In this document: positions 1 through 33,752 of the stretch, one piece after another
Position numbering within the stretch: position 1 is the first letter of the stretch
How the letters are laid out: every line of letters starts with the position of its first letter
Source of the DNA: Macrostomum lignano
Lineage: Eukaryota
Length of the DNA stretch: 64,000 bases
Direction of reading: 5' to 3'
Assembly (NCBI GenBank): GCA_002269645.1
Contig: NIVC01001863.1
Location: 1 to 64,000 of the forward strand
Notes under the pieces: generated by a model
Database searches by the model: none
The model's input: only the letters and a program-made list of their open reading frames with translations
Told to the model about the DNA's origin: nothing
Made by a program: the position numbers and the translations under genes

Positions 1-3000
1 GGCGTCGGATGATGCGCTTGATCACGCGTCGTATCTGGCGTCGGCCCTTAGTCACTCGTTTGCGGACGACTCGTCGGATGATGCGCTTGACCTTGCGGAC
101 GCTGCGTTTAATGCGTTTAACGATACGTCGCTTACTCACTCGTCGGCGTCGGCGGCGGACTACTTTTCGGCGGACCACGCGCTTGCGGATCACTCGTCGG
201 CAGATGCGCTTGATCACACGTTTTGTCACGCGTCGTCCTTAATGACTCGGCGTCGGATGATGCGCTTGATCACGCGTCGTATCTGGCGTCGGCCCTTAGT
301 CACTCGTTTGCGGACGACTCGTCGGATGATGCGCTTGACCTTGCGGACGCTGCGTTTAATGCGTTTAACGATACGTCGCTTACTCACTCGTCGGCGTCGG
401 CGGCGGACTACTTTTCGGCGGACCACGCGCTTGCGGATCACTCGTCGGCAGATGCGCTTGATCACACGTTTTGTCACGCGTCGTCCCTTAATGACTCGGC
501 GTCGGATGATGCGCTTGATCACGCGTCGTATCTGCGTCGGCCCTTAGTCACTCGTTTGCGGACGACTCGTCGGATGATGCGCTTGACCTTGCGGACGCTG
601 CGTTTAATGCGTTTAACGATACGTCGCTTACTCACTCGTCGGCGTCGGCGGCGGACTACTTTTCGGCGGACCACGCGCTTGCGGATCACTCGTCGGCAGA
701 TGCGCTTGATCACACGTTTTGTCACGCGTCGTCCCTTAATGACTCGGCGTCGGATGATGCGCTTGATCACGCGTCGTATCTGCGTCGGCCCTTAGTCACT
801 CGTTTGCGGACGACTCGTCGGATGATGCGCTTGACCTTGCGGACGCTGCGTTTAATGCGTTTAACGATACGTCGCTTACTCACTCGTCGGCGTCGGCGGC
901 GGACTACTTTTCGGCGGACCACGCGCTTGCGGATCACTCGTCGGCAGATGCGCTTGATCACACGTTTTGTCACGCGTCGTCCCTTAATGACTCGGCGTCG
1001 GATGATGCGCTTGATCACGCGTCGTATCTTGGCGTCGGCCCTTAGTCACTCGTTTGCGGACGACTCGTCGGATGATGCGCTTGACCTTGCGGACGCTGCG
1101 TTTAATGCGTTTAACGATACGTCGCTTACTCACTCGTCGGCGTCGGCGGCGGACTACTTTTCGGCGGACCCGCGCTTGCGGATCACTCGTCGGCAGATGC
1201 GCTTGATCACACGTTTTGTCACGCGTCGTCCCTTAATGACTCGGCGTCGGATGATGCGCTTGATCACGCGTCGTATCTGGCGTCGGCCCTTAGTCACTCG
1301 TTGCGGACGACTCGTCGGATGATGCGCTTGACCTTGCGGACGCTGCGTTTAATGCGTTTAACGATACGTCGCTTACTCACTCGTCGGCGTCGGCGGCGGA
1401 CTACTTTTCGGCGGACCACGCGCTTGCGGATCACTCGTCGGCAGATGCGCTTGATCACACGTTTTGTCACGCGTCGTCCCTTAATGACTCGGCGTCGGAT
1501 GATGCGCTTGATCACGCGTCGTATCTGGCGTCGGCCCTTAGTCACTCGTTTGCGGACGACTCGTCGGATGATGCGCTTGACCTTGCGGACGCTGCGTTTA
1601 ATGCGTTTAACGATACGTCGCTTACTCACTCGTCGGCGTCGGCGGCGGACTACTTTTCGGCGGACCACGCGCTTGCGGATCACTCGTCGGCAGATGCGCT
1701 TGATCACACGTTTTGTCACGCGTCGTCCCTTAATGACTCGGCGTCGGATGATGCGCTTGATCACGCGTCGTATCTGGCGTCGGCCCTTAGTCACTCGTTT
1801 GCGGACGACTCGTCGGATGATGCGCTTGACCTTGCGGACGCTGCGTTTAATGCGTTTAACGATACGTCGCTTACTCACTCGTCGGCGTCGGCGGCGGACT
1901 ACTTTTCGGCGGACCACGCGCTTGCGGATCACTCGTCGGCAGATGCGCTTGATCACACGTTTTGTCACGCGTCGTCCCTTAATGACTCGGCGTCGGATGA
2001 TGCGCTTGATCACGCGTCGTATCTTGCGTCGGCCCTTAGTCACTCGTTTGCGGACGACTCGTCGGATGATGCGCTTGACCTTGCGGACGCTGCGTTTAAT
2101 GCGTTTAACGATACGTCGCTTACTCACTCGTCGGCGTCGGCGGCGGACTACTTTTCGGCGGACCACGCGCTTGCGGATCACTCGTCGGCAGATGCGCTTG
2201 ATCACACGTTTTGTCACGCGTCGTCCCTTAATGACTCGGCGTCGGATGATGCGCTTGATCACGCGTCGTATCTGCGTCGGCCCTTAGTCACTCGTTTGCG
2301 GACGACTCGTCGGATGATGCGCTTGACCTTGCGGACGCTGCGTTTAATGCGTTTAACGATACGTCGCTTACTCACTCGTCGGCGTCGGCGGCGGACTACT
2401 TTTCGGCGGACCACGCGCTTGCGGATCACTCGTCGGCAGATGCGCTTGATCACACGTTTTGTCACGCGTCGTCCCTTAATGACTCGGCGTCGGATGATGC
2501 GCTTGATCACGCGTCGTATCTTGCGTCGGCCCTTAGTCACTCGTTTGCGGACGACTCGTCGGATGATGCGCTTGACCTTGCGGACGCTGCGTTTAATGCG
2601 TTTAACGATACGTCGCTTACTCACTCGTCGGCGTCGGCGGCGGACTACTTTTCGGCGGACCACGCGCTTGCGGATCACTCGTCGGCAGATGCGCTTGATC
2701 ACACGTTTTGTCACGCGTCGTCCCTTAATGACTCGGCGTCGGATGATGCGCTTGATCACGCGTCGTATCTTGCGTCGGCCCTTAGTCACTCGTTTGCGGA
2801 CGACTCGTCGGATGATGCGCTTGACCTTGCGGACGCTGCGTTTAATGCGTTTAACGATACGTCGCTTACTCACTCGTCGGCGTCGGCGGCGGACTACTTT
2901 TCGGCGGACCACGCGCTTGCGGATCACTCGTCGGCAGATGCGCTTGATCACACGTTTGTCACGCGTCGTCCCTTAATGACTCGGCGTCGGATGATGCGCT

Positions 3001-5830
3001 TGATCACGCGTCGTATCTGCGTCGGCCCTTAGTCACTCGTTTGCGGACGACTCGTCGGATGATGCGCTTGACCTTGCGGACGCTGCGTTTAATGCGTTTA
3101 ACGATACGTCGCTTACTCACTCGTCGGCGTCGGCGGCGGACTACTTTTCGGCGGACCACGCGCTTGCGGATCACTCGTCGGCAGATGCGCTTGATCACAC
3201 GTTTTGTCACGCGTCGTCCCTTAATGACTCGGCGTCGGATGATGCGCTTGATCACGCGTCGTATCTGGCGTCGGCCCTTAGTCACTCGTTTGCGGACGAC
3301 TCGTCGGATGATGCGCTTGACCTTGCGGACGCTGCGTTTAATGCGTTTAACGATACGTCGCTTACTCACTCGTCGGCGTCGGCGGCGGACTACTTTTCGG
3401 CGGACACGCGCTTGCGGATCACTCGTCGGCAGATGCGCTTGATCACACGTTTTGTCACGCGTCGTCCCTTAATGACTCGGCGTCGGATGATGCGCTTGAT
3501 CACGCGTCGTATCTGGCGTCGGCCCTTAGTCACTCGTTTGCGGACGACTCGTCGGATGATGCGCTTGACCTTGCGGACGCTGCGTTTAATGCGTTTAACG
3601 ATACGTCGCTTACTCACTCGTCGGCGTCGCGGCGGACTACTTTTCGGCGGACCAGCGCTTGCGGATCACTCGTCGGCAGATGCGCTTGATCACACGTTTT
3701 GTCACGCGTCGTCCCTTAATGACTCGGCGTCGGATGATGCGCTTGATCACGCGTCGTATCTGGCGTCGGCCCTTAGTCACTCGTTTGCGGACGACTCGTC
3801 GGATGATGCGCTTGACCTTGCGGACGCTGCGTTTAATGCGTTTAACGATACGTCGCTTACTCACTCGTCGGCGTCGGCGGCGGACTACTTTTCGGCGGAC
3901 CACGCGCTTGCGGATCACTCGTCGGCAGATGCGCTTGATCACACGTTTTGTCACGCGTCGTCCCTTAATGACTCGGCGTCGGATGATGCGCTGATCACGC
4001 GTCGTATCTTGGCGTCGGCCCTTAGTCACTCGTTTGCGGACGACTCGTCGGATGATGCGCTTGACCTTGCGGACGCTGCGTTTAATGCGTTTAACGATAC
4101 GTCGCTTACTCACTCGTCGGCGTCGGCGGCGGACTACTTTTCGGCGGACCACGCGCTTGCGGATCACTCGTCGGCAGATGCGCTTGATCACACGTTTTGT
4201 CACGCGTCGTCCCTTAATGACTCGGCGTCGGATGATGCGCTTGATCACGCGTCGTATCTGGCGTCGGCCCTTAGTCACTCGTTTGCGGACGACTCGTCGG
4301 ATGATGCGCTTGACCTTGCGGACGCTGAGTTTAATGCGTTTAACGATACGTCGCTTACTCACTCGTCGGCGTCGGCGGCGGACTACTTTTCGGCGGACCA
4401 CGCGCTTGCGGATCACTCGTCGGCAGATGCGCTTGATCACACGTTTTGTCACGCGTCGTCCCTTAATGACTCGGCGTCGGATGATGCGCTTGATCACGCG
4501 TCGTATCTGGCGTCGGCCCTTAGTCACTCGTTTGCGGACGACTCGTCGGATGATGCGCTTGACCTTGCGGACGCTGCGTTTAATGCGTTTAACGATACGT
4601 CGCTTACTCACTCGTCGGCGTCGGCGGCGGACTACTTTTCGGCGGACCACGCGCTTCGTCGGCATCACTCGTCGTCGCAGATGCGCTTGATCACACGTTT
4701 TGTCACGCGTCGTCCCTTAATGACTCGGCGTCGGATGATGCCTTGATCACGCGTCGTATCTGGCGTCGGCGTCACGGCCCTCGTAGTCACTCGTTTGCGG
4801 ACGACTCGTCGGATGATGCGCTTGACCTTGCGGACGCTGAGTTTAATGCGTTTAACGATACGTCGCTTACTCACTCGTCGGCGTCGGCGGCGGACTACTT
4901 TTCGGCGGACCACGCGCTTGCGGATCACTCGTCGGCAGATGCGCTTGATCACACGTTTTGTCACGCGTCGTCCCTTAATGACTCGGCGTCGGATGATGCG
5001 CTTGATCACGCGTCGTATCTGGCGTCGGCCCTTAGTCACTCGTTTGCGGACGACTCGTCGGATGATGCGCTTGACCTTGCGGACGCTGCGTTTAATGCGT
5101 TTAACGATACGTCGCTTACTCACTCGTCGGCGTCGGCGGCGGACTACTTTTCGGCGGACCACGCGCTTGCGGATCACTCGTCGGCAGATGCGCTTGATCA
5201 CACGTTTTGTCACGCGTCGTCCCTTAATGACTCGGCGTCGGATGATGCGCTTGATCACGCGTCGTATCTGGCGTCGGCCCTTAGTCACTCGTTTGCGGAC
5301 GACTCGTCGGATGATGCGCTTGACCTTGCGGACGCTGCGTTTAATGCGTTTAACGATACGTCGCTTACTCACTCGTCGGCGTCGGCGGCGGACTACTTTT
5401 CGGCGGACCACGCGCTTGCGGATCACTCGTCGGCAGATGCGCTTGATCACACGTTTTGTCACGCGTCGTCCCTTAATGACTCGGCGTCGGATGATACGCT
5501 TGATCACGCGTCGTATCTGGCGTCGGCCCTTAGTCACTCGTTTGCGGACGACTCGTCGGATGATGCGCTTGATCACGCGTCGTATCTGCGTCGAGTCACT
5601 CGTTTGCGGACGACTCGTCGGATGTGCGCTTGACCTTGTGCGTTTAATGCGTTTAACGATACGTCGCTTACTCACTCGTCGGCGTCGGCGGCGGACTCTG
5701 GCGTTTCACTCGTCGGCAGATGCGCTCGGATGTCCCTTAATGACTCGCTTGATTTGATCACGCGTATCTTCGGCCCTTAGTCACTCGCGGACGACTTCGG
5801 ATGATGCGCTTGATGACATCCTTTTCCGAA
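1..5830 (-). repeat. 249-bp tandem array (~23 copies visible), probably coding (83 codons per unit)
   Basis: Unit length is divisible by 3. The minus frame gives VIKRIIRRRVIKGRRVTKRVIKRICRRVIRKRVVRRKVVRRRRRRVSKRRIVKRIKRSVRKVKRIIRRVVRKRVTKGRRQIRR with no stop, open over up to 4 units between 1-bp indels. Copies are nearly identical. Confidence 0.95.
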
Positions 5831-8475
5831 GAAAGCGCGTTTATGACAAGCCGTTTAGTCTGCGTTTTGTCAGTGGCTTCTTTTTTAGCTTTCGCATGAC
5901 TTTTCGCTGGAACCTTTTGTTAATCTTTCTGAGCTTTTTACCGAATCGCGTCTTTGCCTTGACTATCCTCTTTTTGAATCGCTGAACTCTGCGCTGGAGT
6001 CTGGCCTTGTACCTGAGGCGCATCTTTTGAAGAAACTTCTGATACAACTGCTTCTTCTCTCGCAGCCTCTGGCGGTAGAGACGCAGCTTCATCAGCAGCA
6101 GCTTGGTCTGGTAGCGGGCCTTGTAGATCCGCTTGGCAGCAGCCATGATTTTGCGCTTATCGATGGCGCACTGCTGCGGCGACCGCTTAGTAGCTGGAAT
6201 GGCGGGTTTCTGGCTGTTGGCACAAGGTTTATAAAAGAATTTTTATCATATTTAAAGCTGAGATTGGCAGCTTAGTAGTCTTTTGTCTACCTCTGAATAT
6301 GTAGATTGGCAACTGCGACAAAACTACGTACTATATAACGTTGTGCTTTCTTTTTTTGAAAAAAACGTGCCTTGGATTTGATTGCGTCCCATATTTTCAC
6401 ATTCTGTGGCAGCGCCAGCTGGAAAGCTCCAACTATTTGAATAAGCTCAGATTCCATTCGACAAATTACAGCTTGTTTTTTTGACAAAGGGGATGTTAAA
6501 CTTAAGAGTCAAATCCGACCACTTTAGCATTTGGGATCTGTATGGGGAGAGGGGCCGGCAGCTCGGACAGGTGGGGCGCCTCCAGTTGCTGTTGGGCCAG
6601 TGTGGGGATGAGATGGACTACGGCTCAGGGTTGGTGTTGGGGTTCAGGGACAAGCTTAGGGTTTATGGAATGGAGTTTAGGGTTCAAGGGATGGAGTTTA
6701 GGGTTCAGGTGGTGGAGTTTAGGGTTCAGGTGGTGGAGTTTAGGGTTCAGGTGGTGGAGTTTAGGGTTCAGGTGGTGGAGTTTAGGGTTCAGGTGGTGGA
6801 GTTTAGGGTTCAGTTGGTGGAGTTTAGGGTTCAGGTGGTGGAGTTTAGGGTTCAGGTGGTGGAGTTTAGGGTTTTGTCTCTTCTGGACCTTCTGGACACG
6901 GAGAAATGGGATAAATTGGGATTTCATGTGATCGGAAAACTTTCCTGTGTTATTTTGAGTTGAATATGTTTTCATTGTGTTTTCCAGGACTCCAGTATAC
7001 AGCCCTTTATGAAACATTGTACCAAAACTTGCCGTTAGTTACGCAAGAATGTAAGGCATGCACGTTTAGGAGTGACGGAAGAATGTTAAGCGTTAAGTTG
7101 TGGTTTTTCACGTGGAATCCCCATTTATCCAATTTCTCCCCACAGAGATCCCCAAATGCTAAAGTGGTCGGGCTTTCTGCATAACGGGAGATGTTTGGCT
7201 CCAAATGAAGGGATTGGCGTAGAGAAATCGGGACCCAATTATTCAGGCTCCATTTTGACTCCTAAGTTTACATCCTCTTTAATCTTTATTGACAGTAAAT
7301 TGTCAGAAAAGGTTGAAGTTGTCAATTTCCTGTGCCCGTTTTCTTAAAAAGAGGAACAATATAAGGAGATCCCATAGATTAGGCTCTTGCATAATCTATG
7401 GAAAAAGATACACGAGCGACACGAGACTGGCCACGTATCACTACTTGGTGTGCGCTTGCTGGGCTTCATAAAAGGAATAACATTTCCACTATTTCTGCTC
7501 CAGCGCTACGGATGCCGTCAGATAGTTATGGGTCTCACTGTGCTTGGTACTCCTACTTTAGTTGCAAATAGAAGGCTTGGATTCAAGGCGAGCGTTTGAG
7601 CTGGACACTCTTGGACTGCATTTGAGTACGAGGCATCAGGGCACCGTTGGGAAAGAGGCGGCCGTGTTCTAACGGAACTCACCCGCTTTGAAGCCGGTTT
7701 TGAGAATCAGGTTGCGCCAGAACCCTCCGCAGGTTTGCACGCGGGATCCGTTGCACGGCTTGTTGCACTCCGAGCTCTGGGCGCGGCCGTGCCTACCGTA
7801 GCTGTTGCCGCACCGGCACTCGTTGCCGTTCTGCACTCCGGCGTAGCTGAACCGCAGCTTGAAGCACTGGGCAGCGCAGGCCGCAGGCGTCACGGAGCCC
7901 AGCCTGGCCAGCTTGGGCAGGTCGCGCGGCTTCGCCTTGTCCTTGAAGCAGCCGACGCTGGGCGGCTTCTTGATTGCCTCTGCGAGGATTTGTTGTGTTA
8001 CTGAGTTAGGGGGGGGGCTTTCTCACCCGGGGATTTCGGTCGCGGTGGACACACTGTAGGGAAATTCCAGTCCTACAGTGAACATCCCAGAAAGACCGGC
8101 ATTATTAGCAGTGTATAAAAACCTGTTGCGATAGAAAAGAACAGGAAAGAGTGTCCAATGCGGGGGAAGAAGCGTCCAAGGCGGGGGAAAGAGTGTCTAA
8201 GGGGAGGGAGTGTCCGAAAGACAGGAAAGATGCCCAAAGGACCAGAGGACAGGAAGTGTCCAAAGAACAGGACAGGACGCAGTGGAACATTTAGCATGCA
8301 TTTACCGGTATGCATGAGATTCGCCAATAGGCAAGAGATGTGTAAGAGCGATTGAAACAAAGGACACAGGCTAACACAACAGCTTACTCTTGGCTGGAAG
8401 GCTGGATAAGCTGGCACCATTGGCGGACATGGCTGCCCAGACAGCGAGGATCAGCAGCAGCAGCCAGAGCCTCAT
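1..8475 (-). CDS. Secreted WSC-domain protein with Lys/Arg-rich region and a giant 83-aa Arg/Lys/Val/Ile tandem-repeat tail (3' end outside window)
   Basis: Exon1 8475-8388 (MRLWLLLLILAVWAAMSANGASLSSLPAK, signal peptide; donor A|GTAAGC, phase 1). Exon2 7979-7683 (297 nt, acceptor cctcgcag, WSC motif SVGCFKD...CAAQC...YAGVQNGNECRCGNSY...CNKPCNG...CGG, donor G|GTGAGT, phase 1). Exon3 from 6193 (acceptor gccattccag, phase 1) reads ATKRSPQQCAIDKRKIMAAAKRIYKARY... to an apparent stop at 5841 in a degraded, indel-rich junction, followed by the repeat frame. The link to the repeats requires correcting indels at ~5600-5850. Confidence 0.75.
6515..7171. mobile_element. Foldback/MITE-like element with ~37-bp terminal inverted repeats and an internal 21-bp G-rich array
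   Basis: ccgaccactttagcatttgggatctgtatggggaga at 6515 is the near reverse complement of tctccccacagagatccccaaatgctaaagtggtcgg ending 7171. No clear TSD. Confidence 0.5.
6670..6872. repeat. 21-bp minisatellite (ggtggtggagtttagggttca)n
   Basis: About 9 direct copies. Confidence 0.9.
7683..7979 (-). CDS. WSC-domain exon of the polycationic repeat gene
   Basis: Cys pattern and GCF-x-D, YAG-x-Q-x-G-x-EC-x-CG motifs typical of WSC domains; symmetric phase 1-1 exon. Confidence 0.9.
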
Positions 8476-9677
8476 GTTGAGTCCGGCCGCCGCTTGCGAA
8501 GCAATGTTTGCTGATGACAACCGGCCAGCAATGCAGTTGCCTGGTTGAGATTTTTTGCAGCAGAGTTTCGTTTGTCAAAACAGACAAGCTGGCTGTGGAG
8601 TTTCTCGCTCCGCAGGTTCTCTCTTCTGCCAACGGTTGATCCAAATGGGGGACTCACCGTGGTTAGCTGGGGGACTTCGGAGAGAAGTGAGGCTTCAGGC
8701 GAAGAGCCAGCTGGCTGGTGGGCCGGCGGTTTTATCGCGCTGCCGATACCAGCATTGCGGCCTTCGTGCTGCGTCGATCGCGCCACCACCCGCCTGACCG
8801 CCCCCCCCTCCTTACCCTCCGCGGACCATCGCCGTTCCTGCGAAGGAAGCGCTACAAAAAACCAGCTGGCCTCGAGACCGAGCTGCCGCTGCTTTTGTTT
8901 TGCTCTTCCGGAGCCTCCCGGGCTTGCAGCCGTCGACAGCAACGGCGGGGAGGTGGGGGTGGGGGCACTGCTGCAGTCCTCTACTCTCCGCCCCTCTCCG
9001 CCAGGCCACCCACGGCCGAGAGTTGCTGATTCAGCAGGTGGAGCTCCTGGCCAGCCCCCCAAGCCCCCGCTCTGCAGTAATCGATTCAGCGATACTTCAG
9101 CAAGTTGGCAGCCGCAACGCTGCGCTGTCTTGGGTGGTGCCGGAATGACGAGCAACTGCAACCACTGGCTGCGCCCAGCAGTGCCCAACTCGCATTACCA
9201 ACCCCCCCCCCTCAGTCCAGAGCTGGCAGAGTCCTGCACCCGCAAATTGGAGAACTCGAAAGTCATAAACAGCGCCAGAGAGAATCGATCAGCCTCTCCC
9301 TGCTCAACTCAACCACCCAGAGCTCCAGTTCGAGGATAAATTCCAGGGCATCGAAAGCTGCCGAAAACAAAAAATAAACAACAACAGAAGACGCAACACT
9401 TTAACTGAAAAGTGAACAGCAAACTAAACAAATGCCGTGTGCGGATATCAATATCAAACAGTCGCGTTTTATCTGATTATGAATTCTTTAACAAACTCAA
9501 TCCGTGAAGCAGCTGAATTAACTATCAGCACTGACTAGTTGGGACACTGCGAATAAAATAGTAAAACTGCAAGCACTGCGATAGCGCAAGCTTTGAAAAT
9601 AAGTAGCTCGTAATATCGAATGCTCTTCGCGATTAGTAAGTGCAATAAGAGAAAACTTATTGAAACACGGAAACAAG

Positions 9678-11492: not shown

Positions 11493-14400
11493 CTAGGCCG
11501 CGCCGCTGAGCTGCAGCTGTCGCAGCTTCTCGATCAGCTGAGCCACGGTCAGCATGGCCCTGCTCAGGTGCAGCATCAAGTCGTTCAGCCAGGGCACCAC
11601 GGCCTGTCCGTGGTAGCGGCCGCTGATGTCGTAGGATTTTGTCCGGGTGTTGTAGTGCAGGAAGTACACAGCCAGCACCAGGCGGCGACCGCTGACGTAC
11701 ATCGACAGGCTCATGTCGTTGGGCACCGGGGGATGGAACACCTCCTGTTTGATGCGTTCATCATCAGCACTAATTAAGATCAAGAATATGCAAAATGCTC
11801 TCATAATGAATTCTGGAGCAGGCAATGAGATAATAGAGAACGCTAGAGAACACGCAACAGAATATCAATTATAACACCGATTATAAAACTCATTAGAACA
11901 CTAATTAGAACACCGAATACAACATCAATTAAAACACTTGTTAGATCAGAACACCAATTAGAACATTAATCAGAACAATAATCAGAACACCAATTAGAAC
12001 ACCAATTAGAACACTATTCAGAATACCAATTAGAACACTAATTAGAACACTATTCAGAATACCAATTAGAACATTGATCAGAATACCAATTAGAACACTA
12101 ATCAGAACACCAATCAGAACACTTATTAGAACACTAATCAGAACACCAATTAGAACACTTATTAGAACACTAATCAGAACACCAATTAGAGCATTAATCA
12201 GAACACTAATCAGAACACTAATCAGAACACCAATTAGAACACCAATTAGAACACTATTCAGAATACCAATTAGAACATTAATCAGAACAATAATCAGAAC
12301 ACCAATTAGAACACCAATTAGAACACTATTCAGAATACCAATTAGAACATTGATCAGAATACCAATTAGAACACTAATCAGAACACCAATTAGAACACTT
12401 ATTAGAACACTAATCAGAACACCAATTAGAACACTTATTAGAACCCTAATCAGAACACCAATTAGAGCATTAATCAGAACACTAATCAGAACACTAATCA
12501 GAACACCAATTAGAACACTTATTAGAACACTAATCAGAACACCAATTAGAACACTAATCAGAACACCAATTAGAACACCAATTAGAACACCATTCAGAAT
12601 ACCAATTAGAACATTGATCAGAATACCAATCAGAACACTAATCAGAACACTAATCAGAACATTAATCAGAACATCAATTAGAACACTGATCAGAACACCA
12701 ATTAGAACACAGATCAGAACACTAATCAGAACACTAATCAGAACACCAATTAGAACACCAATTAGAACACTATTCAGAATACCAATTAGAACATTGATCA
12801 GAATACCAATTAGAACACCAATTAGAACATTAATCAGAACACAAATTAGAACACTGATCAGAACACCAATTAGAACACTAATCAGAACACTAATCAGAAC
12901 ATTAATCAGAACATCAATTAGAACACTACTAATTAGAACACCAATTAGAACACCAATCAGAACATCAATTAGAACACTAATTAGAACACTGATTAGAACA
13001 CCAATCATAACACCAATTCAAAAATTTACAAGAACAGCCACAAGAAAGGCGGGCTTCCCCACCTTGTGCCGGCTGTGCGCGAGCTCCTCAACGGATTTCT
13101 TCTGCGGCAGCACCACGTGGTCCCGCGCGGACTTCAGGCAGGCAAAAATTCGGTCCAGGGTCTCGAGGGTCCGCGCCGGCTCGGACTGGCAGCCGACCTC
13201 GCAGGCCTGCTGGATGCAGAGCTTGGCGGCCTGGAGGGTGCTGCCGCAGCCGATGAGCTGCGGATTTGGCAGATTTGTGGGCCGCTCAGGTGAGCTTCTC
13301 AGCGCGAATCCTCTAGATGAGTTCCGATGTCTCTACCGGTAGATGTGCCCAGATGTCTAGAGGGGAATTACAATCTCATGAAAAATCGCAAGGGCGTCTA
13401 AAAAGTTTTCACTGTCTTTAGAGAGGCCGGGCTTAGAGGTCAAAAGAAGATCTCCAGAGGTCTCAAGATTGTCTTGCGACGTTTCAGAGTCTTTAGAGGG
13501 GTCTCAGTCTCGTGTTCTCTGTCCAGATGTCCAAGTGTCTATAGATGGGTATCAGTGCTGTCTGTAGATGTCCAATGGTATCTATAGGCCCCAGAGTACA
13601 CTGAGTCGCCGGCAGAATACTCTATATGCTATATGCAGTGCATGTTTTCAACAGACAAGTATTGTAATCGATAGAGTATTTGCGTGCACAAAAATGCACA
13701 CAGAATACTTCTGGAAGGTTCGTAAACAGAGTTCAGCCAGAGTAATAAAAGAGCAGGTTGCTTCAAGGCGCATTGCTGAATTGCGATATGGTTTGAAACT
13801 GCTGAAAGCAGCAGAACCGCGGCTCGTGAGGGCGGCGGTGGGTGTGGGGGCAGAACCGGTCCGAAGCAGAGTTGGGCTGCATTTCTGCTTGCAGTTGCTT
13901 CTTTTGCGACAGATCGAGCGGTTGAGGAGACAAACCCGCAGAGGGCGGTGCAACTGCCAGCAGCGCCCAACCCTCGGCCAGGGGAGGGGGGGGGTTCGGG
14001 AGTTCCTGCACAGCTCACTCACAGCTGCCCCTACACGCCTCCCCGGCCGAGGCAAGGGCGAAGCCAGCCGGACAGTGCACGATCCCCAGCAGCGCCCAGT
14101 GACAAAATTATAACTCCAAAAATGAGCTCACCTGCTGCAGCTTGTAGGAACTGCCTTCGGCTATGCCGCAGCGGTAGAACTGCTTGAAGGGGCTCTCGAC
14201 GCTGATGTCCTGCGGCGCAAGGGAGAGGTCGGTTCTACATTATTCACACAGTGGCTTTGGTCATTCACACACTGGCTTTGGTCATTCACGCACTGGCTTT
14301 GGTCATTCACACACTGGCTTTGGTCATTCACGCATTGGCTTTGGTCATTCACGCACTGGCTTTGGTCATTCACACACTGGCTTTGGTCATTCACGCACTG

Positions 14401-17311
14401 GCTTTGGTCATTCACACACTGGCTTTGGTCATTCACGCATTGGCTTTGGTCATTCACACAGTGGCTTTGGTCATTCACACACTGGCTTTGGTCATTCACG
14501 CACTGGCTTTGGTCATTCACGCACTGGCTTTGGTCATTCACACACTGGCTTTGGTCATTCACGCACTGGCTTTGGTCATTCACGCACTGGCTTTGGTCAT
14601 TCACACACTGGCTTTGGTCATTCACGCACTGGCTTTGGTCATTCACACACTGGCTTTGGTCATTCACGCACTGGCTTTGGTCATTCACACACTGGCTTTG
14701 GTCATTCACACACTGGCTTTGGCCATTCACACACTGGCTTTGGCCATTCACGCACTGGCTTTGGTCACACACACTGGCTTTGGTCATTCACGCACTGGCT
14801 TTGGTCATTCACACACTGGCTTTGGTCATTCACGCACTGGCTTTGGTCATTCACACACTGGCTTTGGCCATTCACGCACTGGCTTTGGTCATTCACACAC
14901 TGGCTTTGGTCATTCACGCATTGGCTTTGGTCATTCACGCACTGGCTTTGGCCATTCACACACTGGCTTTGGCCATTCACGCACTGGCTTTGGTCATTCA
15001 CACACTGGCTTTGGTCATTCACGCACTGGCTTTGGTCATTCACACACTGGCTTTGGTCATTCACGCACTGGCTTTGGTCATTCACACACTGGCTTTGGTC
15101 ATTCACGCACTGGCTTTGGTCATTCACACACTGGCTTTGGTCATTCACACACTGGCTTTGGTCATTCACACACTGGCTTTGGCCATTCACGCACTGGCTT
15201 TGGTCATTCACACACTGGCTTTGGTCATTCACGCATTGGCTTTGGTCATTCACGCACTGGCTTTGGCCATTCACACACTGGCTTTGGCCATTCACGCACT
15301 GGCTTTGGTCATTCACGCACTGGCTTTGGTCATTCACGCACTGGCTTTGGTCATTCACACACTGGCTTTGGTCATTCACGCACTGGCTTTGGTCATTCAC
15401 ACACTGGCTTTGGTCATTCACGCACTGGCTTTGGTCATTCACACACTGGCTTTGGTCATTCACACACTGGCTTTGGTCATTCACGCACTGGCTTTGGCCA
15501 TTCACACACTGGCTTTGGCCATTCACGCACTGGCTTTGGTCATTCACGCACTGGCTTTGGTCATTCACGCACTGGCTTTGGCCATTCACACACTGGCTTT
15601 GGTCATTCACGCACTGGCTTTGGTCATTCACGCACTGGCTTTGGTCATTCACGCATTGGCTTTGGTCATTCACACACTGGCTTTGGTCATTCACACACTG
15701 GCTTTGGTCATTCACACACTGGCTTTGGTCATTCACGCACTGGCTTTGGTCATTCACACACTGGCTTTGGCCATTCACGCACTGGCTTTGGTCATTCATA
15801 CACTGGCTTTGGTCATTCACACACTGGCTTTGGCCATTCACGCACTGGCTTTGGTCATTCATACACTGGCTTTGGTCATTCATACACTGGCTTTGGTCAT
15901 TCATACACTGGCTTTGGTCATTCACGCACTGGCTTTGGTCATTCACGCACATGTATATCATTCACGCATCCAACTATCGGTCACCATTTAGGAATGAGCA
16001 TTCACTCTTTGACTAGAAGTTCATTCTAAATACAATAAAGTATAGGCTAAGAGTACAGTTGGAACTTACTGCTTCTGTTATCTCGTCTCCATTGAGAGTG
16101 ACTACTGCTTTGAGACTGCATTGTCTAAAATTTAGCAACATTGAGATTAAAGTTAAGATAAACAAATTTGCACTGGTACCATTAGACATTCTGGGTACTC
16201 ACTCATTGGGAGTGAACAGAAATTTACTGGCAGGTTGGGCAAGCTTCTTTTCAGACTGGTCCACAATAACTTGCAACTGTTGTAAAGTGGCAATGTACTC
16301 ACGCTCAAGAAGCCAAGCCAGCTCATCCATTGCTGTGGATAGAATATTTTAACATAAATTTTTTGTATTATTGTACTAAATTTATAAATTTAAACTAAAT
16401 TGCATTAAAGTGTTTTGCTTTTGTCTTATAAACAAAAATGCTTCCAAAATTCTTTAAAATTATGTTGAAATAGCTAAAATACATGTCTAGAACAAATAGA
16501 AAACTGTTTTCAGTGATAGATATAGTAGTTTGAAAATAAAATATGAAAGAAATCAGAAATTTTTATTTTGTTTTTTTCAAATATAGTATACTACCATATA
16601 GAATAATCACAATCAGAATTTAATTTTTTAAACAGTTTTTTATCTATCTTTGTATAACTAGTAATGGTATATTATTAACTTTAGTCCTCATCTAATATGC
16701 TTTTAATCTAGCATAAAATAGTGAAATACAAAAGCTGCATGACATCACCATAGCCATGGGCTGATAGCATAGCAATTAGCAATGATTAAAAAACAGTCAT
16801 GTTTACATTGATTGATTATTAGACATTATTAAGGAAGAAAAGTATCATGTCCAGGCGCAAATTAGAAATTTTTGAACGGGGCGCAGATTACCAAGGTAGT
16901 TTTGATTTGATTTGATTTTGATTATTTATTTATTCAATTATTCAGGTCGTATTACGCAGAGAAAAGAAAAAACTCTATGGGCGCACACACCCTTTGTGCG
17001 CTACCCCTGAATTCACTACTGATAATGTCTTGCTACACCTAAATCTGGAATGCCTATACTCTTCAATAAGAGCAATATGCACGTTCATTCGGCATTCGCT
17101 AAGCGAACATGTCATTAGATAGCGGCTTCCGTTGAAATTCCGTTATTCTGTTATTGGGTCTAAGTTATTTCTTAGAAAATCGAATTATTGTAAAGTTTCC
17201 GCTATTGAAAACGTTTAAACACATTTGAAGTCATCTCCGAATGTTATGCTCTGAAATAACCCTCTTGTAATTTTAAATTAATTTTAAACTAATTGAATTA
17301 CCTTTTGCCAT
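11493..17311 (-). CDS. ROGDI: Rogdi (RAV2-like) leucine-zipper protein, ~239 aa
   Basis: Exons 17311-17302 (MAK, tentative), 16332-16203 (MDELAWLLERE...), 16124-16070 (LKAVVTLNGDEITEA), 14209-14132 (DISV...YKLQQ), 13257-13063 and 11744-11493 (FHPPVPNDMSLSMYVSGRRLVLAVY...VVPWLNDLM). All junctions are GT-AG and in phase. The motifs match my recollection of Rogdi family motifs (FRWLL, LTLQGD, WKLQQIQD, VPWLND). Confidence 0.88.
11880..13015. repeat. 12-bp minisatellite (agaacaccaatt)n filling a Rogdi intron
   Basis: Direct tandem copies; source of the spurious IGVL/IRTP ORFs. Confidence 0.92.
14240..15950. repeat. 21-bp minisatellite (cattcacacactggctttggt)n filling a Rogdi intron
   Basis: About 80 copies between the 14209 acceptor and the 16070 donor. 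Confidence 0.95.
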
Positions 17312-26093: not shown

Positions 26094-28242
26094 TATTGTA
26101 TTTCCAACGAATGCAAATGTAAATGCTTATTTTATATCTATGGCTCAGTCATGCTTCAATATACAGATAAGTGAGTCGCAGCCCCAGAGGCTGATCATTT
26201 TTCTTTTCTAGCACAAGAGCTAGTACACCAGTAATACAACATTGGTGACAGCGGTAAAAGCGCACTTGGCGCGAAAGTGCATCTCCGCTGCAGGACAGAG
26301 GCGGCACACCAAATATGAGCCTACTACCTCAGCCATCTCCGTTCGACCCGGAAAAGGATCCATCGAACGTGGCGAAAAGATGGGAGGACTACCTACAGGA
26401 AATCACGCTGTGGTTGGACGCCTGCGGAATAACAGACGACAAAAGAAAGCGATCTGCATTTCTGCTCTGTGCCGGTGTGAAAGTTCGAAAAATACTAGAA
26501 AACCTGGACAACACAGGATCTGACTTCAAAACGGCTCAGACCCGACTGGACGAGTACTTCAAGGACGGAACAAACGTGGTATACGAAACCTTCAACCTGC
26601 TGCAAATCAGGCAAAAGGAAGGTGAGGCCATTGACTCTTTCCATGGCCGACTGCGGGAAGCAGCGAAATACTGCGACCTCGAGGTATCAACCACTGATGC
26701 AACAACCAAACTGTCCTATGAAGACCGAATAATTCGCGATCTTGTAGTCCTAAACTGCAACTCAAACAGCCTCAGACGGAAGCTCATCCAAGAAGGGTCA
26801 ACTCTGACTCTGAAGAGAGCTATCGAAATAGGAAGATGCTTCGAATCGACGAACAGCCAGAGCGGAGTCATTGAGAAGCACTTCTCCGACCCGAGCACCG
26901 TCAATTCAGTTGGACAGTCCAAAGGACCAAGAAGATTCCCTAAATCGAAGAAAACTGGAATTGACAGCAAGCAGTTTCTCAGAAGAAATTCCAGTGCTCG
27001 CGATGTCTGTAGCCGCTGTGGAAGAAGCTCACATACAGCAGAAAACTGCTATGCGCGCAACGATACTTGCAAGAAGTGCAATAAGGTGGGACATCATGCC
27101 AAGATGTGCAGAACCAAACTACCAACCAAAAGTAAACTTCAAGTTTACGAAACGAAAGAATCGGGCGTGACTGAATCGTCAGACTCAGAGGAGATTCATA
27201 CGATAGCAAGCGTCAGCGCGAAGAACGGTGCAACAAAGCAAGCTGTCATCAACGGCAGAAAATGCGATGTACTAATTGACTCGGGCTCCAATCTAAATCT
27301 AATATCCTACAACACAGTTGCTAAAATGGTGAGTCCGGATCAGATTAACTCGAGATCACATATCAAGATTTGGTCGTACGGGGCCAGGACCCCCATCGAA
27401 ACCCAAGGCACAGTACATCTGGAAGTTACTCTCAACGAAAGTACACAGCAAATGAAGTTTCACATAACTCCAGTAAAGGATGCACGCACTATTATCGGAT
27501 TTGAGGACGCCTTCAAGCACGGTTTCCTGACACGGGGCTCGGATAAAAGCTGCCTTCACATCGAGAACATTCAGCAGCCAACGCAAGTGATTCTGGAAGA
27601 GTTCAAGGATGTCTTCCGTGGAATAGGAAAACTCAAAGACAGCAAAGTTAAGATTCGCCTGAAGGAGAACGCCAATCCTATTGTTCATCCACCATCGCGT
27701 ATACCAGCACACCTTCACCAGAAACTGCGCGAAGAACTAGAAGGGCAGTTAAGAGAGGACATAATCGAGCCAGTCAAGGGAACTACTGAATGGGTGTCAA
27801 GAATAGTGGCTGTTCCGAAGGCCAACGGTAAATTGAGAGCCACGGTTGATCTCAGAGACCTAAACAAAGCTACTAGGAAGGAGCACTATCCACTGCCCAG
27901 CATCGACGAACAACTGATTAACGTTGGCGATGCTAAGTACTTCTCCTACTTGGATGGCAATAAAATGTTTCATCAGCTAGAACTGCACGAAGACTCCAGG
28001 ATGCTCACGACATTTTCAACAGGCCTGAAAGACTGGCCACTTATGAGATATAAGAGACTACCAATGGACTGGGTGAACTCATCGTTTGCACTCCAATCGG
28101 AAATGCATCAAGTTCTTGCTGGCATTTCAGGAGTTCTGAATATCCAGGATATCCAGAATATCCAGGATATCCAGTTCTGAATACCCAGAGGCTGATCATT
28201 TTTCTTTTCTAGCACAAGAGCTAGTACACCAATAATACAACA
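26094..28242 (+). mobile_element. Internally deleted Ty3/Gypsy LTR retrotransposon
   Basis: 5' LTR 26094-26241 (TaTTGTATT...AATACAACA), PBS-like TGGTGACAGCGG at 26243, 3' LTR remnant 28184-28242, and 5-bp TSD gtgtc on both sides. Confidence 0.92.
26315..28180 (+). CDS. Gypsy gag-protease-RT polyprotein, truncated in RT
   Basis: Two CCHC knuckles (CSRCGRSSHTAENC, CKKCNKVGHHAKMC), protease LIDSGS, and RT motifs WVSRIVAVPK...VDLRDLNK and YFSYLDGNKMFHQLEL. It ends at VLNIQD where the catalytic DD is expected; RNase H and integrase are absent. Confidence 0.93.
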   Translation: MSLLPQPSPFDPEKDPSNVAKRWEDYLQEITLWLDACGITDDKRKRSAFLLCAGVKVRKILENLDNTGSDFKTAQTRLDEYFKDGTNVVYETFNLLQIRQKEGEAIDSFHGRLREAAKYCDLEVSTTDATTKLSYEDRIIRDLVVLNCNSNSLRRKLIQEGSTLTLKRAIEIGRCFESTNSQSGVIEKHFSDPSTVNSVGQSKGPRRFPKSKKTGIDSKQFLRRNSSARDVCSRCGRSSHTAENCYARNDTCKKCNKVGHHAKMCRTKLPTKSKLQVYETKESGVTESSDSEEIHTIASVSAKNGATKQAVINGRKCDVLIDSGSNLNLISYNTVAKMVSPDQINSRSHIKIWSYGARTPIETQGTVHLEVTLNESTQQMKFHITPVKDARTIIGFEDAFKHGFLTRGSDKSCLHIENIQQPTQVILEEFKDVFRGIGKLKDSKVKIRLKENANPIVHPPSRIPAHLHQKLREELEGQLREDIIEPVKGTTEWVSRIVAVPKANGKLRATVDLRDLNKATRKEHYPLPSIDEQLINVGDAKYFSYLDGNKMFHQLELHEDSRMLTTFSTGLKDWPLMRYKRLPMDWVNSSFALQSEMHQVLAGISGVLNIQDIQNIQDIQF

Positions 28243-30596: not shown

Positions 30597-33500
30597 ACCA
30601 GCGCAATTCCACTATGCACCTGAAAACCCCAATCCAGCAGACACAAGCAGCAAAGCGACTGAAAATGGCAGTCCTAGAAATTGTACCGCTTCCCCGCCCG
30701 CCGATGCTGCGGCTGCTCTTGGCGGGGCCCCGGCTGCGCCAGACCGCCTGCTTGAAGTTGGGCACGCCGGCCGGGCCTCGGTTCGGCTTTCGGGTCACCC
30801 AGCCGTCATCCTCAGCTTCCTCGCTGGTCTCCCGATAGTTGACAAGGAAGTCGGGCACCTGCTGCTTGCACGCCTGCAGGACTTGGAGCAGGCCTTTGCG
30901 AATGTCGCCAATGCGGAGGTCGCCGCTGTCCAAGAAGGTGACGGCCCGGCCCGGGCGGCCCAGGCGGCCGGTGCGACCGACCCGGTGGATGTACTGGTCC
31001 ATGTACATCGGGGCGTCGAAGTTCACCACCAGGCCGACGCCGGGCAGGTCGAGGCCTCTGGCGGCCACGTCTGTGGCGATGAGCACGGAGCTGCGGCCGG
31101 ACTTGAAGCTCTGCAGAGACAGCTGGCGGGACTGCGGGACGGAGACGAGCAAAACTTCTGGGTTTCCATTCTCATGCAAACAAACCAAGAGTTTGTCTAT
31201 TTTTAGAAACCTAGAATTTGGGAATTAGTAGGTGAATAGTAGGAATAGGAGTAATGGGATTCTCTGTAGCGGGATTCTCTGTAGCGAGATTTCCTGTAGT
31301 GGGATTCCCTGTAGTGGGATTCCCTGTAGTGGGATTCCCTGTAGCGGGATTCCTGCAGCGGGATTCCCTGTAGTGGGATTCCCTGTAGTGGGATTCCCTG
31401 TAGTGGGATTCCCTGTAGTGGGATTCCCTGTAGTGGGATTCCCTGTAGTGGGATTCCCTGTAGTGGGATTCCCTGTAGTGGGATTCCCTGTAGTGGGATT
31501 CCCTGTAGCGGAATTCCCTGCAGCGGGATTCCCTGCAGCGGGATTCCCTGCAGCGGGATTCCCTGCAGCGGGTTTCCCTGAAGTGGGATTCCCTGTAGTG
31601 GAATTCCCTGTAGCGAGATTCCCTGTAGCGGGATTCTCTGTGCCCGATTCATCGCAAAACAAAGATCAAACGCTGCCTAGCTGAGCTCCGCAGCATCGCA
31701 GACGCCATCCTCCCCATCTCGGACTCACGTGCTGCTTCATATCGCCGTGGATGGTCGCAGCGGAGAAGCCACCAGCCAGCAGGCGGCGGTGCAGCCGGTC
31801 GGCCCCGGCTTTGGTCCGCACAAACAGCAGGCAGCGCTCGCCTTCACCGAGTTCGGCCAGAAGGCGCTGCAAAGCCTCCAAGCGCTGAGCTTCGCCCCGG
31901 CTGATCAGGCGGAGCTCCTGGCTGATGCCGGCCGGCACGGGTCCGGACTCGGCCCGGCCAGCCCGGACAGAGACGCAGTCGTCCGGACGCATCAGATTTC
32001 GAACTATTCGGTTCACGTCCGATGGGAAGGTGGCCGAGTACAGCGAAGTCTGCCGGTCGGCCGAGGGCGGCATGCCAAACTCCCTGCTGCTGACGATTCT
32101 GCGGATGTCGCGCTCGAAGCCCATGTCCAGGCAGCGGTCGGCCTCGTCCAGCACCAGCTGGCGGCAGGCCGTCAGCGACAGGATGCCGCGCTGCATGAAG
32201 TCCAGCAGGCGGCCCGGCGTGGCCACGGCAATGTGCAGGCCTTCGGTCAGGATCTGCGTAGGGGATTGGTATTATCACAGCACTGGCATGATCACAGCAT
32301 TGGCATGATCACAGCACTGGCATGATCACAGCACTGGCATGATCACAGCACTAGCATGATCACAGCACTGGCATGATCACAGCACTGGCATGATCACAGC
32401 ACTGGCATGATCACAGCACTGGCATGATCACAGCACTGGCATGATCACAGCACTGGCATGATCACAGCACTGGCATGATCACAGCACTAGCATGATCACA
32501 GCACTGGCATGATCACAGCATTAGCATGATCACAGCATTGGCACACAACACATGACCACACAGCATGACACACACGACCACACAGCATGACACACACATG
32601 ACCACACAGCATGACACACACATGACCACACAGCATGACACACATGACCACACAGCATGACACACATGACCACACAGCATGACCACACATCATGACACAC
32701 ATGACGACACAGGATGACACACATGACCACACATCATGACACACATGACGACACAGGATGACACACATGACCACATAACATGACACACATGACCACACAG
32801 GATGACACACATGACCACACATCATGACACACATGACGACACAGGATGACACACATGACCACATAGCATGACACACATGACCACACAGGATGACACACAT
32901 GACCACATAGCATGACACACATGACCACACAGCATGGCACACACATGACCACACATAATGACACACATGACCACACAGCATGACACACATGACCACATAG
33001 CATGACCAGTCAAACAATAACCACCCCCCACTGACCCTCTGCCGCATGGGCTCGGGACTGAGGCCGCCCACCAGCAGGCCGCAGCTGATCCTGGTGAAGC
33101 AGGTGAGGCGAAGCAGGTCGGCGAGGATCTGCTGCGCCAGCTCCCTAGTCGGGCAGATGATGAGGCCGCTAGGATACTGGGTGAGCTCATCGGCCTCCCT
33201 AACCAGCTCCATAGCCTGGGCAGGATAGTTGGCAGCCAGCCGGCTGACCAGGGGCACCAGGTAGGCCAGGGTCTTGCCGCTGCCCGTCTCCGCCTGCACC
33301 GTGGCGTCCAGGCCGGCCAGGCCGACCGGCACCGCGCCGCGCTGCACAGGCGTCATCTCGTCCACCCCCATGCGGCCGAGCGCCTCCAGCACGCGGGGCT
33401 CCAGCGAGTCGGCCAGCTGGCTGAACCGGACAGCCGAGCTGTTGGCAGGCGAGAAGGCGCCCGACTCAACCGGGCGGCCCGAGTGGGTGAGCGGCACCTG

Positions 33501-33752
33501 CGCAAAGTGGACTCGGGCCGCCTCCGACATGCCGCCACCGCCGCCGCCGCCGCCGTCCGACTCGATGTCGCTGTTGAGATTTTTGGTGTCGGACCAGAGA
33601 CTGGCCGGCCGCTCCACTCGGGCACCCCAGCTCTCCGCTCTCACCAGGCCGCTGGTGGACCGGCGCAGGCCGCCTCCGCCGCCGCCTCTGCCTCTGTTGC
33701 TGTGAAGCGCTCTGGTCAGCAGCGACCAGATGAGCCGCTGATGAGGATGCAA
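30595..33752 (-). CDS. DEAD-box RNA helicase, DDX3/Ded1/Vasa-like, with an RGG/transit-peptide-like N-terminus
   Basis: Exons ~33752-33036 (Q motif TPVQ, AETGSGKT, PTRELAQQI), 32253-31729 (ATPGRL, DEAD, SAT, HGD) and 31131-30595 (ATDVAARGLD, HRVGRTGR). Junctions are phase 0 GT-AG. The start is uncertain: the first in-frame ATG is MSEAA, well downstream of the open frame start. Confidence 0.92.
31250..31640. repeat. 15-bp minisatellite (gggattccctgtagt)n in helicase intron 2
   Basis: Direct tandem copies. Confidence 0.9.
32275..33005. repeat. Compound array (17-bp catgatcacagcactgg, then ~22-bp catgacacacatgaccacacag) in helicase intron 1
   Basis: Two adjacent arrays sharing a catga core. 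Confidence 0.88.

Follow-up and report, generated by a model that had tools for sequence, protein, structure and literature searches.

Among the closest described systems is Mlig-ap1, a giant secreted protein of the flatworm Macrostomum lignano that has a carbohydrate-binding module and whose extremely basic, repetitive Lys/Arg-rich (K/R-rich) regions exceed 3,600 residues (PMC6410801). Electrostatic cohesion has been proposed for these K/R regions, which polyanions such as heparin neutralise (PMC6410801). Mlig-ap2 provides a precedent in the same species for a coding tandem array (PMC6410801), and proteins with a WSC domain are prominent among the prostate-limited seminal-fluid candidates (PMC5977470 Table S1, PMC6953679, PMC4490696). 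We analyzed a stretch of 64,000 nucleotides, referred to as the window, which was identified by sequence identity as positions 1-64000 of contig NIVC01001863.1 in the M. lignano assembly Mlig_3_7. On its minus strand the window carries a gene for a WSC-domain protein with a signal-peptide-like start, and downstream of it an array of 249-bp units that runs off the contig end and has an open frame of Arg, Lys, Val and Ile (the R/K/V/I frame). The gene belongs to an M. lignano family, Mlig029036, that has recently undergone duplication and is apparently lineage-specific; its transcript cluster is numbered up to g11. An earlier note on this DNA, made from the sequence alone, had named Mlig-ap1 as a precedent for a K/R-rich secreted protein, and that precedent is real (PMC6410801).

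We hold with moderate confidence that the best explanation of the family is an architecture of signal peptide, one glycan-binding WSC domain, basic helix of about 100 residues, short Cys-containing linker and giant coding array with the role of a secreted polycation, and we consider translation of the array probable for the intact copies. The paralog Mlig029036g11 (PAA48566.1), at locus L002 on contig NIVC01004115.1 and with the same Rogdi neighbour upstream as in the window, was found to contain an unbroken open reading frame (ORF) of 2,687 codons. This ORF opens just inside intron 2, at 16 codons before the exon-3 acceptor, and runs through the exon-3 tail and a unique linker, ...RKGFISRRAAKIAKKPIQIQKRRSPVTIHGNMICKCRNI, into 30 array units. 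Over the unique 470 nt ahead of the array the coding frame has no stops, compared to 9 and 7 in the other two frames, and the antisense open frames stop at the array edge. The conceptual spliced product is 2,799 aa long (353 kDa), with 1,537 Lys and Arg, 8 Asp and Glu and a net charge of +1,529, and is composed of 38% Arg, 18% Val, 17% Lys and 14% Ile. It was noted that the L002 array (37.6 copies at 99% by Tandem Repeats Finder) also leaves its contig, so that 2,799 aa is a minimum. The same junction was found in a second assembly: in the ML2-assembly model A0A1I8F1Q9, exon 3 passes through the linker into the R/K/V/I frame without a change of frame, as ...CRNIKRIIRRVVRKRVTKGRRQ, reading into ...KRIIRRVVRKRVTKGRRQ before a frameshift. 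Continuity in frame over unique sequence is thus present in two assemblies. The collinearity of array and gene proposed in the earlier note is borne out, in frame, in L002 and A0A1I8F1Q9, whereas the window's own copy is interrupted.

The public record represents this locus only as fragmentary hypothetical proteins. The minus-strand GenBank gene BOX15_Mlig029036g1 (window 8475-5940) is a "hypothetical protein, partial" of 213 aa without a stop codon, as would be expected if the ORF continues downstream. The first 213 residues of the spliced product are identical to its transcript-based model, PAA63193.1, which confirms the splice sites, and the spliced window protein was found by homology search to be 100% identical to the M. 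lignano UniProt entry A0A1I8GNH5. A second GenBank model, of 565 aa at 5597-3637, lies entirely within the array on the strand of the WSC gene, and in our own reconstruction its length was reproduced with a 263-nt GT-AG gap across an aberrant 262-nt unit. Six further GenBank models of 164 residues lie along the L002 array, all in the R/K/V/I frame; at both loci the array models therefore share the strand of the WSC gene and this frame. The Mlig_3_7 annotation was made from transcript evidence only, using stranded RNA-seq, StringTie with --rf, a mapped de novo transcriptome, TACO without the unstranded assembly, and TransDecoder for coding sequences (CDS) (PMC5730564). Because it was built from transcripts alone, the array is represented in RNA data. 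It was noted that the GenBank CDS of the window copy (5939-5940) and of the L002 copy (13277) both end, as partial, at ...TRFG before GTAAAAAG; this endpoint may reflect a break in the assembled transcript, internal priming on an A-rich stretch or a genuine alternative splice donor. No mention of Mlig029036 was found in the paper full texts and supplements searched, the reconstructed 565-aa and 164-aa array models had no exact match in the protein collection, and the UniProt entries A0A1I8GNH5 and A0A1I8F1Q9 have no contig on record.

The features of the gene and its array in the window are as follows.

8658..8837, minus strand: exon of the 5' untranslated region (5'UTR), at least this much, from the N-terminal extension of A0A1I8GNH5 at 100% identity.
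8657-8541, minus strand: 5'UTR intron of 117 nt, from the same A0A1I8GNH5 mapping.
8388..8540, minus strand: start-codon exon, with ATG at 8475-8473 and a signal-peptide-like N-terminus, MRLWLLLLILAVWAAMSANGAS, from the sequence and equal to PAA63193.1.
7683..7979, minus strand: WSC exon of 297 nt, phase 1-1, with eight cysteines (Pfam PF01822).
6194..7682, minus strand: intron 2, GTGAGT...CAG, about 97% identical to the L002 paralog, from sequence and alignment.
5841..6193, minus strand: exon 3, the K/R-rich tail, from the spliced ORF; the assembled end is TAA 5843-5841 and the GenBank CDS ends at 5940.
5573..5840, minus strand: degenerate junction, the first array unit with multiple deletions and frame changes, from the L002 alignment and three-frame translation.
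3637..5597, minus strand: public 565-aa gene model, from the GenBank Mlig_3_7 gene table and our reconstruction, with the 263-nt gap.
1..5572, minus strand: array with 22.4 copies of an 83-codon (249-bp) unit, running off the contig end (Tandem Repeats Finder).

The coding exons at 8475-8388, 7979-7683 and 6193-5841 join through canonical GT-AG introns in phases 1 and 1, the start-codon exon ending in phase 1 ahead of GTAAGC. They give an ORF of 245 aa that, in the window copy as assembled, terminates at TAA 5843-5841. The N-terminal extension of A0A1I8GNH5 maps to 8837-8670 and 8541-8389, with a GTGAGT donor and a CAG acceptor at the junction, and with this 5'UTR exon and intron the gene has at least four exons. 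The three-exon minus-strand WSC gene described earlier was thus right in its coding exons, splice sites and WSC domain (Pfam check, 1.5e-18), but its count left out the 5'UTR exon. The signal peptide was assigned by its n/h/c-region pattern only. The WSC profile PF01822 matches residues 38-115 over positions 2-82 of its 82, with E = 1.5e-18 and a score of 67.2 bits (cut-off 27.8), and eight cysteines within residues 40-112 of the spliced product align to those of the Kremen1 WSC domain, which is also the nearest solved structure to residues 31-124 (PDB 5FWS and related; E = 6e-14). Pfam returned only WSC in the N-terminal part and no significant match in the array. The exon-3 tail comprises 117 residues, 48 of them Lys or Arg and 2 Asp or Glu, and when modelled alone (AlphaFold2, single sequence) it is predicted to form one alpha-helix of about 99 residues, from 5 to 103, with a mean pLDDT of 90.7. 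Two repeats were observed within the introns. Intron 2 contains a 21-bp minisatellite, AACCCTAAACTCCACCACCTG, with a CCCTAA telomere-like core (window 6671-6873, L002 12387-12547), and an element of about 89-96 nt in intron 1 is single-copy in the window (8274-8369) and about eight-fold tandem in L002 (10194-10906).

The array occupies 1-5572 with 98% matches by Tandem Repeats Finder, and a degenerate unit carries it to about 5830 in the alignment, which agrees with the extent of 1-5830 given earlier. Since it reaches position 1, the array leaves the contig end, and its true length and the 3' end of the gene lie outside the assembled sequence. The minus-strand open frame of the consensus unit reads KRIIRRRVIKGRRVTKRVIKRICRRVIRKRVVRRKVVRRRRRRVSKRRIVKRIKRSVRKVKRIIRRVVRKRVTKGRRQIRRVI and contains 34 Arg, 16 Val, 13 Lys, 12 Ile, 2 Gly, 2 Thr, 2 Ser, 1 Cys and 1 Gln, with no Asp or Glu and a net charge of +47, exactly the composition and charge that the earlier note had read from it. 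The unit is open in three of its six frames, namely this minus-strand frame and two frames on the plus (antisense) strand, both of which are open because the plus strand is A-poor; the remaining two sense-strand frames hold 5 and 7 stops per unit. It was noted that the hexamer ATTAAA occurs once per unit on the sense strand (22 in total) and AATAAA does not occur. If used as a poly(A) signal, ATTAAA could end transcripts inside the array and add to the fragmentary models. A period divisible by three was dropped as strong coding evidence, since roughly one in two of the window's other tandem arrays has such a period too and it does not discriminate here.

In the multiple alignment the array units vary almost solely by single-base indels. 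The R/K/V/I frame as assembled in the window is broken about 12 times by 1-nt indels, with a longest open stretch of 359 aa. Across the 21 full units there are eight scattered 1-nt deletions and one aberrant 262-nt unit (4854-4593), and the sole kind of substitution is G>T, found twice. A hot-spot, CGC[C/A]AGATA, was found as the Q-type in 13 cases (12 in full units), as the K-type in 3, with one nucleotide lost in 4 and with one gained in 2. Overall, about 14 one-base indels stand against one substitution type, and 6 of these indels fall at the site where the Q- and K-types differ. Among 36 units of L002, 31 are K-type without any nucleotide difference and 5 carry the same -1 variant, four of these five being consecutive and near the contig end. 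Judged from sequence, the excess of indels over substitutions, together with their clustering at the unit-type site and towards the contig ends, points more towards errors of long-read consensus or polishing than towards mutational decay.

The junction ahead of the window array was then compared with that of L002. Exon 3 is identical as far as ...KRRL, after which the window has two 2-nt insertions that create the TAA, lacks the 101-nt unique linker, and shows about eight deletions of 1-20 nt in its first unit. The earlier suspicion that the TAA at 5841 was the artefact of a single indel cannot be upheld with differences of this number. The ML2 model A0A1I8GNH5 matches the window in its 5'UTR frame and its coding and allele markers, yet has an L002-type junction (RLRLVKRAFF and the start of the linker, with a 1-nt deletion of its own), a combination that fits a local misassembly of the window. 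From these comparisons, either the window copy is broken or its assembly is locally wrong. Much of its damage is probably assembly error, although the copy may be truly truncated. We regard it as possible, though tentatively so, that the window copy is a pseudogene, a decaying duplicate of functional Mlig029036 genes: the stop at 5841, the lost 101-nt linker and the first-unit deletions of 2-20 nt exceed typical long-read consensus errors, the window array has many frameshifts, and the M. lignano genome has undergone extensive recent duplication. Such decay is at odds, however, with the intact exons 1-3, which are about 97-99% identical to the L002 copy, and with array defects that, as nearly all 1-nt indels and one substitution type, are the reverse of a mutational spectrum. 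The window-like 5'UTR frame and coding markers of A0A1I8GNH5 joined to an intact-type junction also speak against it, as do the frameshifts of the paralog, which cluster near its contig end too. A Rogdi_lz-domain gene was observed directly upstream of the WSC gene at both loci (window about 11493-16330, minus strand; L002 3031-6766), which indicates that the duplication was segmental and included neighbouring genes.

Because the array has the features of a satellite, an important question is whether it codes at all. The competing account is that it is non-coding satellite DNA lying beside, or in the 3'UTR of, the gene for a small secreted WSC protein of about 245 aa with signal peptide, WSC domain and basic helix; its open frame would then come from base composition, and its transcripts would be read-through or noise. 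We consider this account unlikely. The assembled window ORF does end at TAA 5843-5841 ahead of the array, across a degenerate junction, and half of the six frames are open. Like a satellite, the array is extremely homogeneous and sits at the ends of contigs, and tandem repeats, which fill the window, make up 15% of the M. lignano genome (PMC5730564). Near-identical head-to-tail units were found in both arrays. A satellite would also be expected to have no frame continuous with a neighbouring gene, and this is the case in the window copy, with its stop at 5841. In L002, however, no stop separates exon 3 from the array, and a ribosome translating this mRNA would have to enter the array in its sole open sense frame. 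The same in-frame junction in an independent assembly and the transcript-based CDS annotated without a stop argue in the same direction. In addition, the exon-3 tail and the linker, which are unique sequence, share the K/R-plus-aliphatic character of the array, and the strongest internal self-similarity offsets of the unit are all multiples of three (mean identity 0.334 versus 0.227 elsewhere).

Several observations weigh against a translated array. With three of six frames open, an open frame by itself is weak evidence, and the CDS strand of the array models may partly be TransDecoder's choice among these frames. The sub-repeats within the unit mismatch at 26, 22 and 29 sites at codon positions 1, 2 and 3, giving no third-position excess, which also favours the satellite account. 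The window copy stops before the array across a badly degenerate junction, and the -1 variant, which recurs at an identical site in the two arrays, may be genuine, in which case it would end the ORF. Two units modelled together in AlphaFold2 reached a pLDDT of 49.8, with no confident fold and a helical tendency only. A chain with 55% basic residues would be demanding to translate and translocate, as ribosomes stall on polybasic tracts. That the array belongs to the WSC mRNA and is translated is a prediction from gene models and ORFs. The paralogs are 97-99% identical including introns, so that dN/dS is not computable, and protein-database searches found no homologs outside M. lignano. The R/K/V/I frame had no match in the homologous-protein search or in phmmer against 1.84 billion representatives, nor did the antisense frame of Ala, Ser, Asp and His used as a DNA-level probe, in searches whose low-complexity bias filters and candidate caps probably hide even identical sequences. 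These negatives for the array thus say little about its novelty.

If the array is translated, its product may act in more than one way. The most economical reading, and our best guess, is a glycan-anchored polycationic cohesive secretion. The giant chain would be made in and secreted from a gland cell and would act as a polycationic matrix or condensing agent. Its array may bind polyanions such as sulfated glycans, the glycocalyx or mucus by charge, the paired Val/Ile residues and the one Cys per unit could provide hydrophobic and disulfide cohesion, and the WSC head would anchor the whole to a specific carbohydrate. An origin in the prostate, as a component of seminal fluid, is a strong candidate and a serious possibility, plausible because WSC proteins are common among prostate-limited transcripts. 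Of 65 such ORFs, 6 have no stop codon, and none of the prostate WSC transcript ids could be linked to the Mlig029036 locus in the papers and supplements searched.

We also assessed the periodicity of the unit. Its hydrophobic residues fall into 18 clusters per unit, and the period that dominates is 4.6 residues. In 18-residue windows at 100 degrees, the helical hydrophobic moment averages 0.57 compared to 0.35 +/- 0.07 in shuffles, with local maxima of 1.09, and strand-type moments are low. The analogy to amphipathic Arg/Val peptides drawn in the earlier note is therefore supported by the local moments but not by the dominant period, which is 4.6 rather than 3.6. The unit contains 27 dibasic positions, two K-G-R-R motifs and four R-x-[KR]-R sites, and these sites bear on a further account in which the product is a polyprotein that proprotein convertases would cut into many short cationic amphipathic Arg/Lys/Val/Ile peptides with antimicrobial or membrane activity. 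The strongly amphipathic 16-mer (Q/K)IRRVIKRIIRRRVIK, which is flanked by the two KGRR motifs, could for instance be C-terminally amidated; Gly followed by a dibasic site is a mark of amidation sites in peptide precursors generally. The R-x-[KR]-R sites and the signal-peptide-like N-terminus are compatible with this account, as are those 18-residue windows that reach a moment of 1.09, similar to 1.14 computed for the engineered peptide WLBU2. We nevertheless judge it quite improbable. The 27 dibasic positions of each unit set no defined peptide boundaries, and if all were cut indiscriminately, only pieces of 1-6 residues would result. Typical antimicrobial precursors carry acidic spacers or propieces that neutralise their cargo, and here there are none, with only 8 Asp and Glu in 2,799 residues. 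In each of the 31 in-frame units of the paralog, Lys takes the place of the Gln from which an N-terminal pyroglutamate could form, the hydrophobic period does not follow the 3.6 residues of a helix, and one Cys per unit suits cross-linking better than free peptides.

A bolder claim, which we put forward as doubtful, is that the Mlig029036 products would surpass every natural polycation described so far in size and charge (over 2,800 residues and a net charge above +1,500), encoded by a perfectly homogenised coding 249-bp satellite and either serving as a scaffold of seminal fluid or gland granules or cut into dozens of peptides. If this were true, the cut-up form would be a natural counterpart of the engineered LBU/WLBU2 antimicrobials, and thousands of consecutive polybasic residues would be translated and translocated, which would challenge views on ribosome stalling. 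If the array is translated, a single giant gene has been divided in the public annotation between a partial hypothetical protein and several orphan models, and the annotation has missed a protein class relevant to flatworm secretions, including bioadhesion, seminal fluid and mucus. With +47 per 83 residues, Val/Ile pairs and one Cys per unit, the array would be a natural polyelectrolyte or coacervate-type design that tests the synthesis and secretion of extreme polycations. The locus would further illustrate that satellite-like arrays at the contig ends of repeat-rich genomes can be coding exons, and that consensus errors at one polymorphic site can mimic pseudogenisation.

The remainder of the window was also surveyed. 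Positions 9678-64000 hold more than 25 minisatellite arrays with periods of 4-60 bp, several of them 1-1.7 kb long and about half with periods divisible by three, and many of these minisatellites give long spurious ORFs in several frames. An ORF of 621 aa on the plus strand (26315-28180) matches RVT_1 (E = 3.6e-9) and is presumably a retrotransposon fragment. On the minus strand, an ORF with a DEAD/DEAH-box helicase domain (32496-33752; E = 2e-17) is probably an exon of a helicase gene.

We compared the protein with known systems, using the conceptual L002 product. It resembles Mlig-ap1 of the same species in its basic character, with 1,537 Lys and Arg and 8 Asp and Glu among 2,799 residues. 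Mlig-ap1, however, has a core of C-type lectin, vWD/C8/TIL and EGF-like domains, whereas Pfam found only WSC here. Judging by the antibody peptide SRKPRRKNRKSRKP, the K/R regions of Mlig-ap1 contain Ser, Pro and Asn, in contrast to the order Arg>Val>Lys>Ile with one Cys of the present unit. The supplement text of the paper on Mlig-ap1 (PMC6410801) was found to contain neither KRIIRR nor RRVVRK. Given the different domain core and repeat composition, the relation appears to be one of functional analogy rather than homology, and membership in the Mlig-ap1 family was rejected for lack of the domain core. The prostate WSC proteins, such as Mlig-pro46 and RNA815_80.4, share the species, a signal peptide with a WSC domain, lineage-specificity and poor annotation, and are described without a polycationic repeat tail. 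Kremen1 is a transmembrane receptor of Kringle, WSC and CUB domains that has only the WSC module in common with the present protein.

The LBU/WLBU2 peptides resemble the unit in combining Arg with beta-branched aliphatic residues and no acidic ones, and in their moment (local maxima of 1.09 here versus 1.14 for WLBU2). They differ as synthetic 12-48-mers of strict 3.6-residue design, compared to a chain of about 2,800 residues with a 4.6 period and with Lys, Ile, Gly and Cys. Mucin VNTR (variable number tandem repeat) regions and Mlig-ap2 (46 repeats of 221-255 aa) share the long, homogenised head-to-tail coding repeat that is satellite-like and breaks assemblies, whereas the present array has 31 identical units in the paralog and is polycationic rather than rich in Ser, Thr and Pro. 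Protamines share a very high Arg content. They are small nuclear proteins without a signal peptide or extracellular domains, and a protamine was rejected for a product of thousands of residues with a signal-peptide-like start and a disulfide-rich WSC domain, the argument from start and domain having already been made correctly in the earlier note. Giant K/R-rich secreted repeat proteins are thus known in M. lignano; the present one is new in its WSC head, its unit of Arg, Val, Lys, Ile and Cys, its extreme charge and its perfectly homogenised coding satellite.

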